Sequence record: NC_061451.1 | Strand: one strand, 5' to 3' | Length of the DNA stretch: 64,000 nucleotides | Shown: positions 18,675-22,863 of the stretch, piece by piece | Numbering within the stretch: position 1 is the stretch's first letter | Layout: the number at the start of each line of letters is the position of its first letter | Notes under the pieces: generated by a model | What the model was told of the DNA's origin: nothing | Seen by the model: only the letters and a program-made list of their open reading frames with translations | Database searches by the model: none | Made by a program: the position numbers and the translations under genes

Positions 18675-18881
18675 ATGAAAGACATTGTGCTACACACAGC
18701 CCTTTTATTGACCATGATCGTTGTTAGCTTTTTGACTCTCCACTACATTCGCTTCCTGAGTCTGGGCTACTATATGCTGATCACTATGACAGCATTCGTA
18801 CTGGCAGTCTATGCGTGCAAACGTCTCGCATCTGTCGTATCTAAAAATCGTTTTAACAAAGTGAGAATCAATCGTGGCTAA
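18675..18881 (+). CDS. Small membrane protein (2 TM, basic C-tail)
   Basis: Two hydrophobic helices then KRLASVVSKNRFNK. Confidence 0.65.
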   Translation: MKDIVLHTALLLTMIVVSFLTLHYIRFLSLGYYMLITMTAFVLAVYACKRLASVVSKNRFNKVRINRG

Positions 18882-19419
18882 ATCTTTCGGTGTGTACCTG
18901 ACGTTCATTCTGCGCCATCGCCCGCAAGACATTGGCCTTGCAATGGACACTCAGGGTTGGGTATCAGTTCCTGACTTGCTCGAACGTGCTCAATATAAGA
19001 AGCAGCCAATCACGTTAGAGATGTTGCGTGAAGAAGTTGCTACTGACGGTAAAGGCCGCTTCCAGTTCAACGCTGCCCACTCTCGCATTCGTTGTGTGCA
19101 GGGACATTCAGTTGAGCATGTGATTCTTAATCTAAAGCCGTACACAAATCACAATGACCCGCTGTATCACGGAACGGCCAGCAAGAACGTTGCGTCTATT
19201 CTTGCGCAGGGAATTCTTCGCGGTAAACGTAAACACGTCCACATCGCAACCAACACCGCTACTGCTAAGCAAGTTGGTCAGCGTCACGGTGAACCTGTTG
19301 TGTTTGAGATCGACACGTATGCCATGATTACTCACGGCTATAAGTTCGAACAAGCCGAGAACGGTGTGATTCTTACCGAGCACGTCCCATCCCGATATCT
19401 AAGGTTGGTAGAGTTATGA
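18874..19419 (+). CDS. kptA: RNA 2'-phosphotransferase (Tpt1/KptA)
   Basis: ILRH, GWV, KGRF, IRCVQGHS, LYHGT, R.HVH, NGV.LT..VP..YL signature motifs. Confidence 0.95.
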   Translation: MAKSFGVYLTFILRHRPQDIGLAMDTQGWVSVPDLLERAQYKKQPITLEMLREEVATDGKGRFQFNAAHSRIRCVQGHSVEHVILNLKPYTNHNDPLYHGTASKNVASILAQGILRGKRKHVHIATNTATAKQVGQRHGEPVVFEIDTYAMITHGYKFEQAENGVILTEHVPSRYLRLVEL

Positions 19420-19989: not shown

Positions 19990-20235
19990 ATGCAAGAGAT
20001 AGAAATTCACGGCGAAGTTGAGATCGCCGACCTCATTGATAGCGAGTCAGTGACTAAGGCAATCGAACGTTTTCAACAAAACCCAACCGAACATAATCGT
20101 GTTCGTATGATCGTGGCAATCTCTGAACATGCTTACGATGAAATGGGAATCACTGTTGATATTTGTGGTAATTCAGATAGCGAGGAAGAAAATCATGATG
20201 CGCAACTTCACAGCAATCCTGCCAGTAACCTGTAA
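19990..20235 (+). CDS. Hypothetical protein
   Basis: GAGG RBS, 81 aa. Confidence 0.65.
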   Translation: MQEIEIHGEVEIADLIDSESVTKAIERFQQNPTEHNRVRMIVAISEHAYDEMGITVDICGNSDSEEENHDAQLHSNPASNL

Positions 20236-21334
20236 TGCCGATTGTTCATTCTGCCCTGAGAAAGAAATGGAGCAGAAAGCTACGAACCGCCAGTGGCTGA
20301 CTAATCTCATTGCGCAGATTAATGATCATGCGGGTGAGTTCGACCACGTTTCTATTTCCGGCGGTGAACCTACGCTCAAGCCAAAGTTCCTGTTTGAAGT
20401 GATCGATGCGATTCGCACTCAAACGGATATCGATAAAGTTGGACTCACGTCAAATGGTCGCTTCCTGAATAAGCAAGACAGCATCTTCCAGTTCCTTGAT
20501 CTGAACACAGACGACATGCTGGAAAGCAAGCTGTCCCATCTGAATATCAGCCGTCATTCATTCGACGATGCCAAGAACAACGAGATCATGAAAGTGCGTT
20601 ACACGTACACGCTTGATGACCTCGTGAAGTTTAGACGTCAACTCGGCACAAAGCTGAGCTTCCACATTAACTTTGTTATCAACGAGCACAACATCGATAA
20701 CATTGAGTGGGAGTTTGCCCAGGCTAATCGATTCATGATGGAGAACCCGTGGATCGATGTAGTGTTCCGCGTTGACTATGCGAACGAAAAGCTGAATCGT
20801 CGTCTGCGTCGTTACGGCCTGTCTGTGCAAGCGTGGCGTGATGCAACTCGCGGCTCTATTCGTGAAGAACGCATAGCGCGTGAGAATCTGAAAAAGAAAC
20901 CCAAACTCGTTCAGTTGTTTGATGGCGTGTTCAGCGGCACAACACAGGACAATGACGGTACATTTACCGATGCGTGTCCAAGCTGTTTCGTACATCGCAG
21001 CCAGAAGATTCATAACAACCACGCGTGGCTCAAAGCATCCTCGTACGAACCGAACGTAGACGAAGAGGAATACACTGAGTACGTGTTCCACATGGACGGT
21101 GAGCTTTACTACGACTGGTCGCGTGCTGAGCCTGTGCCTGACGTAGAGAAGAAACCACGCAAACACAAAGCCATTCGCATTGTCCAGAGAGAAGTGGAAG
21201 AAGATGATATGGATGAAGACATTCCTGCATCTTCTCGTATGGGTTGTCAGTATAGAACTGTCGGATGTTCTTACGGTGAATCAGAATCTGCTGGTGGCTG
21301 CTCATTTAGAACTACTGGCAGCTGTAGCTTTTAA
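20195..21334 (+). CDS. Radical SAM enzyme with C-terminal Cys/aromatic repeat tail
   Basis: CNADCSFC (CxxxCxxC), SISGGEPT, GLTSNG, LNISRH, CPSC; start at ATG 20195 after GAGG. Confidence 0.9.
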   Translation: MMRNFTAILPVTCNADCSFCPEKEMEQKATNRQWLTNLIAQINDHAGEFDHVSISGGEPTLKPKFLFEVIDAIRTQTDIDKVGLTSNGRFLNKQDSIFQFLDLNTDDMLESKLSHLNISRHSFDDAKNNEIMKVRYTYTLDDLVKFRRQLGTKLSFHINFVINEHNIDNIEWEFAQANRFMMENPWIDVVFRVDYANEKLNRRLRRYGLSVQAWRDATRGSIREERIARENLKKKPKLVQLFDGVFSGTTQDNDGTFTDACPSCFVHRSQKIHNNHAWLKASSYEPNVDEEEYTEYVFHMDGELYYDWSRAEPVPDVEKKPRKHKAIRIVQREVEEDDMDEDIPASSRMGCQYRTVGCSYGESESAGGCSFRTTGSCSF

Positions 21335-22599: not shown

Positions 22600-22863
22600 A
22601 TGGCAGTAGGTTTCGCCAAAGATGATGACGTGTCCAACACCGTCGAAACAAACGTGCTGAATGAAATCGACCGCGCTCGTTCTGAGTTGCGTGGCGCTGG
22701 TAGTTCGCATTGTATCAACCCTGACTGTGGTGCAGAGATTCCACTCATGCGCCGCGTAGCAATGCCGAACGCTCGCTACTGCGTTAGCTGTCAAGCACAC
22801 CACGACGGTACGCCGACTGCTGGCTACAATCGTCGTGGTTCCAAAGATTCTCAACTGAGGTAG
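22600..22863 (+). CDS. DksA/TraR-family C4 zinc-finger protein
   Basis: CINPDCGAEIPLMRRVAMPNARYCVSCQ; N-terminus MAVGFAKDD; short TraR/YbiI-like size. Confidence 0.9.
   Translation: MAVGFAKDDDVSNTVETNVLNEIDRARSELRGAGSSHCINPDCGAEIPLMRRVAMPNARYCVSCQAHHDGTPTAGYNRRGSKDSQLR

Follow-up and report, generated by a model that had tools for sequence, protein, structure and literature searches.

The product of gp282 (MPK74_gp282 / YP_010303423.1), a gene of the 265.6-kb jumbo phage Erwinia phage pEa_SNUABM_7 (genus Snuvirus), is a radical S-adenosylmethionine (SAM) enzyme that ends in a conserved cysteine module on a tether predicted to be disordered. In the gp282 family the module occurs either fused to the enzyme or as a separate adjacent open reading frame (ORF), so that its role as the peptide partner of the enzyme is well supported by comparative genomics. 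The gene lies on the plus strand of the 64,000-nucleotide stretch of NC_061451.1 analysed here (the window, in which a position equals the record position minus 201635), and its annotated coding sequence is labelled 'hypothetical protein' in that record. In our preferred reading, to which we assign a probability of about one half, the module would serve its own enzyme as peptide substrate and undergo Cys-centred radical chemistry. A radical SAM enzyme with a cognate Cys-rich peptide is known already; what is new is the fusion of the two in cis, the minimal enzyme without a SPASM domain or a recognition element for ribosomally synthesised and post-translationally modified peptides (RRE), and the phage-wide distribution.

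The reading frame of gp282 comprises 379 codons and a stop, with no internal stop codon, and the start at 20195 is favoured by the N-termini of its homologues, a longer ORF from 20129 being also present. The 5' end of the gene and gp281 (19990-20235) share a 41-nt overlap. The features of the gene are listed below, those of the fold being taken from an AlphaFold2 (AF2) model built with 50 homologues, without clusters and SAM, and with confidence expressed as the predicted local distance difference test (pLDDT).

20195-21334, plus strand: whole gene, radical SAM enzyme with tethered Cys module (ORF, annotated coding sequence)
20195-20839, plus strand: radical SAM core, residues 1 to ~215, partial barrel (Pfam PF04055, 2.4e-11, and PF13353)
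20231-20254, plus strand: CxxxCxxC (C13, C17, C20), ligands of the [4Fe-4S] cluster for SAM cleavage (motif match)
20351-20371, plus strand: SISGGEP, the Gly-rich SAM-binding motif of the superfamily (S53, G56, G57 and E58 invariant)
20786-20932, plus strand: helical bridge from core to beta-domain, residues 198-246 (AF2 helices 198-218, 222-230 and 237-246)
20963-21124, plus strand: C-terminal beta-domain, residues 257-310, the family signature (conservation, AF2 strands)
21125-21241, plus strand: linker predicted to be disordered, residues 311-349, basic then acidic (pLDDT ~90 dropping to <50)
21242-21274, plus strand: Cys-pair unit 1, GCQYRTVGCSY (C351, C358), from the translation
21275-21295, plus strand: spacer GESESAG separating units 1 and 2, from the translation
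21296-21331, plus strand: Cys-pair unit 2, GCSFRTTGSCSF (C369, C377), from the translation
21332-21334, plus strand: stop codon, from the translation

A preliminary description of this DNA had proposed a radical SAM enzyme, and gp282 is a member of that superfamily: the CxxxCxxC motif is present, with C13, C17 and C20 invariant among the 50 aligned homologues, the Pfam Radical_SAM model is matched with 44.5 bits against a gathering cut-off of 29.5 (Fer4_12 being matched as well), and the AF2 model contains the partial barrel. Residues 1 to ~320 are confidently modelled (mean pLDDT 85.8) as a radical SAM partial barrel that a helical bridge joins to a small beta-domain. The core (pLDDT >90) superposes over ~195 residues on viperin, MoaA and SuiB, with a Foldseek probability of 1.00, and its SISGGEP segment lines up with the equivalent motif in viperin and MoaA. 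The beta-domain, with strands at residues 257-261, 264-268, 277-282 and 295-298 (pLDDT 81-96), bears on a hairpin a CxxC that is nearly invariant in the family (C261 and C264; 20975-20986) and that is ringed in the model by the family's most conserved polar residues; also conserved in this domain are E285, P286, E295, H299, D301, G302, D307, W308 and R310. Searched alone, the C-terminal domain has no match among PDB sequences at E<=10 and none in Pfam.

The basic-then-acidic linker, both Cys-pair units and the spacer had all been described before and were recovered in gp282 at their claimed positions, as were four C-x-(Y/F) motifs, formed by Cys 351, 358, 369 and 377, each of which has Tyr or Phe at +2; the chain ends exactly in C-x-F (Cys-Ser-Phe). 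Residues 338-379 have pLDDT values below 50, and in the model of the short-linker member P0142, the body of which exceeds 90, the pLDDT of the tail falls from 73 to 49, the tail being predicted to be disordered in these two independent models.

An exhaustive profile search for the gp282 family among 1.84 billion representative proteins returned 248 clusters at E<=1e-30 and 958 at E<=1e-10, and the tail was surveyed in 191 members in which the conserved domain gave an anchor. The tail conservation and the variation in repeat number named as a test in the preliminary description were both found, with an extension holding at least two Cys at the C-terminus of 178 of the 191 anchored members (no extension in 10) and with 2-10 Cys per module, spaced 3-17 residues apart. 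In 157 of the 178 extensions the last Cys is at most two residues from the end, being the final residue in 77, one before the end in 30 and two before the end in 50. In P0019, P0024 and P0030, two Cys pairs stand apart on Lys-rich spacers of 30-40 residues, in the manner of multi-core precursors, which shows the pair to be the repeating unit of the module. Since Gly follows Cys at 324 tail positions family-wide, the module in its general form consists of two Cys embedded in Gly/Ser-rich residues at the very C-terminus, and C-x-Tyr/Phe is its jumbo-clade variant. The C-x-(Y/F) motif pointed out in the preliminary description is thus not what defines the family, whose wider motif is usually Cys-Gly, and the analogy with three-residue cyclophanes rests on a variant confined to one clade. 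Membership of the three-residue cyclophane (triceptide) systems was itself rejected, as the motif begins with Cys and not with an aromatic residue and the wider family has Gly or Ser at +2.

The composition and length of the linker differ widely across the family. Heptad stretches of coiled-coil appearance occur in the linkers of P0089, P0100, P0121 and P0151 and in the stand-alone peptides described below; they suggest oligomerisation, in which case one subunit could act on the tail of another. In one metagenomic relative (L040:3944-4801) the radical SAM gene is not intact, with one break.

The jumbo-clade variant is documented by 68 homologues from a word-indexed search, mostly on contigs of 250-330 kb; ~47 cultured Erwinia, Dickeya and Yersinia jumbo phages are among the carriers of gp282 homologues. 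Nearly all of the 68 have a highly variable linker followed by two to six C-x-[YF] motifs at the end. Within the last 45 residues of 69 family proteins, Tyr, Phe or Trp is found at +2 of 147 of 218 Cys residues, in related sequences whose counts are not independent, compared with a mean of 16.3 (standard deviation 3.8, maximum 30) in 2000 shuffles, and the motif pattern is beyond chance. The chain ends exactly in C-x-[YFW] in 39 of the 69 proteins and in Cys in a further group of 18/69. Furthermore, the C-x-aromatic motif survives from 98% down to ~35% identity, whereas the intervening residues are replaced. Between gp282 and a 98%-identical relative, five of nine substitutions fall within the 69 residues of linker and tail and none of the nine hits a Cys or aromatic position, on account of which purifying selection acts on the tail motif and not on the surrounding sequence. 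Tyr and Phe are equally frequent at +2 in this clade (73 each), and this parity argues against phenol-dependent chemistry and for a role of the aromatic residue in recognition. The homologues P0004-P0012, P0018 and P0020-P0027 are ~100 residues longer than gp282 before the C-terminal domain, the anchor of the longer jumbo-clade homologues ending near residue 400-416 as against 310 in gp282.

The two units of gp282 had also been described as written in visibly different codons. This holds in so far as just 18 of 33 aligned nucleotides are identical between them, and a recent DNA duplication of the Cys-pair unit is ruled out by this identity together with the absence of a detectable direct repeat between units 1 and 2; the TCA and TCT codons that had been singled out are ordinary Ser codons here. 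By the same two observations, the repeat is old and kept up at the protein level. Arg is encoded by AGA in both units, a rare codon here (7% of those for Arg across 13 genes nearby), and this is consistent with an old common origin of the units.

In addition to the fused tails, the module exists as a gene of its own. On the contigs of DW-type members whose chain stops immediately behind the conserved domain, an adjacent ORF on the same strand encodes a Cys module in all 8 tail-less lineages with usable flanking DNA, against a background, by the same criterion, of 6 among 678 non-adjacent ORFs of the same loci (0.9%). These ORFs are the following.

L009, same strand: 75-residue module ORF starting 2 nt past the radical SAM stop
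L011/L012, same strand: 82-residue module ORF, 3 nt downstream of the radical SAM gene
L019, same strand: 65-residue module ORF, 3 nt downstream of the radical SAM gene
L023, same strand: 29-residue module ORF, 3 nt downstream of the radical SAM gene
L008, same strand: 79-residue module ORF, second gene downstream of the radical SAM gene
L010, same strand: module ORF cut at its 5' end, upstream of the radical SAM gene
L025, same strand: 93-residue module ORF, 13 nt upstream of the radical SAM gene
L007, same strand: 217-residue ORF with the motif at its N-terminus, immediately upstream of the radical SAM gene

The small stand-alone module proteins have 29 to 93 residues, and the split proteins consist of a helical/coiled-coil or Lys/Arg-rich first part with Cys-Gly pairs at the end. 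Neither the split peptides nor the tail have a significant match in Pfam or NCBIfam; weak bZIP, leucine-zipper and coiled-coil Pfam matches of the L011 peptide (L011:2770-3018) reflect its helical, leader-like part. Because the module occurs both fused and as an adjacent ORF, the comparison of these loci gives good support to the view that the tail is no incidental extension but a discrete partner, which can be separated from the enzyme. Other arrangements were also seen: L014 has an internal array of at least 8 Cys-Gly motifs, L033:3706-4719 has a C-terminal CxxC...CxxC element with the look of a zinc ribbon where other members have their Gly/Ser-rich tail of Cys pairs, and no module was seen in the divergent sister group of L048, L063, L079 and L083.

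On the reading that the module is the substrate, the two Cys-pair units of gp282, at the end of a disordered tether of ~40 residues, would be presented to an enzyme whose [4Fe-4S] cluster, bound by C13, C17 and C20, would cleave SAM to give the 5'-deoxyadenosyl radical. With the beta-domain that bears C261 and C264 as an aid, the module would enter the active site by its chain end, and there the radical would set off a reaction at the module Cys, such as the formation of a thioether-type cross-link inside every pair, either in cis or between subunits. Inspection of the called genes of ~15 loci, with no formal all-against-all comparison, showed no conserved third gene, protease or exporter. With no other conserved neighbour across loci, enzyme and module look self-sufficient, and since no protease or exporter travels with the gene, the product would probably stay attached to the enzyme, a released natural product not being indicated by the loci. 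The preliminary description had seen in gp282 a self-modifying enzyme that carries its substrate in cis. The partnership of enzyme and peptide in that proposal stands, by virtue of the split ORFs, as do the radical SAM hallmarks and the conservation, flexibility and separability of the module, whereas the substrate role and the chemistry are what we infer from them.

Several points weigh against a substrate role. The SPASM/twitch auxiliary-cluster domain and the RRE of known Cys-cross-linking peptide maturases are absent, and the nearest characterised relatives are nucleotide enzymes (MoaA, viperin) as much as peptide enzymes. With the substrate as part of the protein, few turnovers per molecule are to be expected, a costly arrangement. 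The Cys counts of the extensions, even in 138 and odd in 40, fit metal ligation or disulfide chemistry equally well, and the Lys-rich linkers could indicate a nucleic-acid substrate. Finally, the tail is undocked in both AF2 models (gp282 and P0142), which contain no clusters or SAM.

Some of these points are shared by the alternative that survives best, although we consider it rather unlikely, namely that the module is a cofactor-like arm, serving as a redox shuttle, as a sacrificial sulfur donor or, together with C261 and C264, as a source of Fe-S ligands, while the enzyme acts on another substrate. The predominance of even Cys numbers agrees with such an arm, and the nearly invariant CxxC of the C-terminal domain could supply the other two ligands of an auxiliary Fe-S cluster, the ligation of which by the tail Cys had been named as an alternative in the preliminary description. 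Class Ia ribonucleotide reductase offers a parallel, in that it has a disordered C-terminal tail with a Cys pair only a few residues from the end, and this pair shuttles reducing equivalents into the active site; it is, on the other hand, an unrelated enzyme, the one pair of which is neither repeated nor found in a split form. The best structural match of the compact member P0142 is MoaA, which has an auxiliary cluster in its C-terminal part (template modelling (TM) score 0.56-0.60 over ~305 columns, root-mean-square deviation ~9 Å). A nucleotide or nucleic-acid substrate would suit the MoaA/viperin-like core, the Lys/Arg fraction of the linkers (0.20 versus 0.12 in the body, family-wide) and the genes for RNA or nucleotide enzymes near several loci (the window, L011, L002 and L005), but these genes are not conserved between loci. 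Moreover, the number of Cys residues and their spacing vary far beyond what is expected of cluster ligands, the unstructured 29-residue peptide of L023 would be an unusual redox carrier, and the module of L007 is N-terminal in a different protein. That one clade has an aromatic residue at +2 points to recognition by a pocket, for which ligation has no need. A fixed structural Fe-S site on the tail Cys is less likely in view of the varying copy number and spacing and the existence of split forms.

A gating function is a good deal less probable still. In MoaA, a flexible and functionally essential C-terminal Gly-Gly tail senses substrate binding and sets off SAM cleavage (PMC12625886), and the module might likewise close the active site over an unrelated substrate, MoaA being among the nearest relatives and the tail being flexible, located at the extreme C-terminus and Gly-rich in most of the family. 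For this purpose one short tail would be enough, and 2-10 Cys in repeated units, tethers of 40-140 residues and a separate gene would be superfluous; in addition, the conserved residue is Cys and not Gly, gp282 lacks a Gly-Gly end, and in a few otherwise intact members, such as P0130 and P0143, the chain end is far from any Cys-Gly motif. We find it more doubtful yet that the tail is low-complexity sequence unrelated to the chemistry of the enzyme, concerned with metal binding, localisation or packaging: its predicted disorder and the position of the gene in the structural modules of some phages (L007 and a T4-like contig) are in line with this, but the module is tied to one enzyme family, fused or adjacent, in hundreds of clusters and in very different contexts. 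Least credible of all is a glycyl-radical site in the tail with the radical SAM domain as built-in activase, for which weak matches to activases (NrdG2 1e-7, PFLA 1e-6, plus Fer4_12), the 324 Cys-Gly positions and the Arg-Cys-Gly-Tyr/Phe sequence common in jumbo-clade tails might be cited, but Gly directly follows only 95 of the 218 Cys in the close clade, many proteins end in Cys and there is no folded glycyl-radical domain, and in gp282 such a site is ruled out, since none of its four tail Cys is followed by Gly (the residues are Gln, Ser, Ser and Ser).

Should the module indeed be the substrate, gp282 would represent a minimal peptide-modifying radical SAM enzyme of ~270 residues with a tethered substrate, no SPASM domain and no RRE, would provide a compact model, found in nature, of how a substrate is threaded and of radical chemistry centred on Cys, and would extend the fused/split enzyme-core logic of the borosins to radical SAM enzymes. 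A wider proposal, in which we place somewhat less confidence than in the substrate role as such, is that this would be the first radical SAM enzyme with its own ribosomal substrate in cis, forming a widespread phage-specific system of at least 248 clusters at 50% identity, whose protein-bound cross-link or cofactor is used in the infected cell. If the tail is instead a redox, sulfur or Fe-S arm, the family would still have an unusual and widespread radical SAM design. Literature searches returned no description of the gp282 family, nor of a radical SAM enzyme fused to its core peptide.

Precedents for the two halves of the substrate reading come from separate sources. Among the sacti- and ranthipeptide systems (CrpC/CrpA, SkfB, CteB, PapB), the radical SAM enzyme CrpC puts thioether cross-links on the Cys-rich protein CrpA (PMC13692751), and the gp282 family resembles them in having the enzyme beside a Cys-rich partner with conserved Cys and in a related radical SAM core fold, SkfB, SuiB and anSME being among its structural matches. 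It differs from these maturases in being small (~270 residues without the tail) and phage-borne, with a partner that is usually fused, and the likeness to sacti-, ranthi- and cyclophane maturases that had been drawn in the preliminary description is weakened by the missing SPASM/twitch domain and RRE. For the former, no Pfam or NCBIfam match was found in gp282 at E<=1, and only C261 and C264 are conserved beyond the SAM-cluster motif; for a PqqD-like RRE there is no Pfam match in gp282 and no conserved third gene in the loci inspected. A cognate peptide gene beside the enzyme, a criterion for SPASM/twitch maturases, was found in the 8 tail-less lineages. As to the fusion, the borosins include fused as well as split enzyme-core pairs (10.1101/2021.12.24.474128), and fused cores are also carried by the BURP-domain cyclases of plants (PMC10107690). 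In both cases, as here, the core is located C-terminally on its own enzyme or on an adjacent gene and its copy number is variable, but the chemistry is that of a SAM methyltransferase or a Cu-dependent BURP domain, in contrast to the radical SAM domain of the gp282 family; membership of the borosins is excluded, as gp282 has a radical SAM domain and no methyltransferase domain was found in it.

Structurally, the gp282 model shares only the core with viperin, MoaA, BlsE, SuiB and EpeE (TM 0.35-0.5), and the sequence-profile alignments to MoaA and viperin are likewise confined to the core, that to MoaA stopping at its residue 189. Viperin and the prokaryotic viperins are among the top structural and sequence matches over the ~195-residue core, but have another C-terminal domain and no Cys tail. 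Over the whole chain, the compact member is structurally closest to MoaA, which also matches the core best in sequence and, like the family, has C-terminal Cys; the C-terminal domain of the gp282 family conserves two Cys (CxxC), as against the three-Cys motif of MoaA, and its tail carries Cys pairs where MoaA has a terminal Gly-Gly. The next structural matches of the compact model are SuiB, viperin, SkfB, EpeE and anSME.

By comparison of gp282 and ten distant members, each scored against the model cut-offs, the family appears to lie outside every curated subfamily tried. This applies to MoaA (TIGR02666, 44.4 bits against a cut-off of 284; NF001199, 45 against 231), to viperin (NF038283, 51.2 against 180; TIGR04278, 26.7 against 450) and to HxsC (TIGR03977, 53.9 against 267.9), in the last case also because the partner motif is a Cys pair and not His-Xaa-Ser. 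The PapB, GggB, DynA, WgkB and KxxxW models gave 15-30 bits against cut-offs of 340-650, PqqE and YydG scored far under theirs, and the glycyl-radical activase models also stayed under their cut-offs. The thymidine-hypermodification radical SAM enzyme of phage M6 (gp53) is spore-photoproduct-lyase-like, with another cluster context, and does not belong to the family. PHROGs matches of gp282 are to generic 'radical SAM domain' families only. The homologue of Erwinia phage vB_EamM_Y3 (KY984068.1 218209-219273, hit H58) is annotated as 'GTP 3',8-cyclase'; as the family scores ~44 bits where the MoaA model requires 284, the label seems to be an over-annotation and should not spread to other annotations. 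In the literature, AD1_267 and Y3_272 are listed as 'Radical SAM superfamily protein' only.

The family is essentially phage-borne, as the preliminary description had supposed for gp282, since among 185,579 prokaryotic species, each represented in the scan by a single genome, just six full-length copies came to light, all on contigs of 5-13 kb from metagenome-assembled genomes and all with fused Cys-pair tails, and all inspected contexts of family members are phage-like. For phage biology, this makes it a family of hundreds of clusters, nearly phage-only, that is kept in the ~47 Erwinia, Dickeya and Yersinia jumbo phages. The neighbouring genes differ between loci. In some phages the radical SAM gene lies among structural genes, directly before the tail sheath and tube genes in L007 (L007:676-1488) and, on a T4-like contig (P0162), with the prohead protease gene on one side and those for scaffold and major capsid protein on the other, a placement that raises the question of the peptide or the enzyme as a virion component. 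In L002 and L005 a dCMP deaminase gene is close to the radical SAM gene, and in L011 the radical SAM relative adjoins a Thg1-like gene and two phosphatases.

In the window, gp282 is surrounded by a long run of small co-oriented genes, most of them without annotation. Four genes upstream, gp278 (18874-19419, plus strand) encodes an RNA 2'-phosphotransferase of the Tpt1/KptA type (PHROG 5470, E 2.6e-62); the presence of RNA-repair genes near the radical SAM gene may be a loose association or a coincidence. Downstream, gp287 (22600-22863, plus strand), annotated as hypothetical, encodes a small DksA-like zinc-finger protein (PHROG 54, E 2.8e-14).

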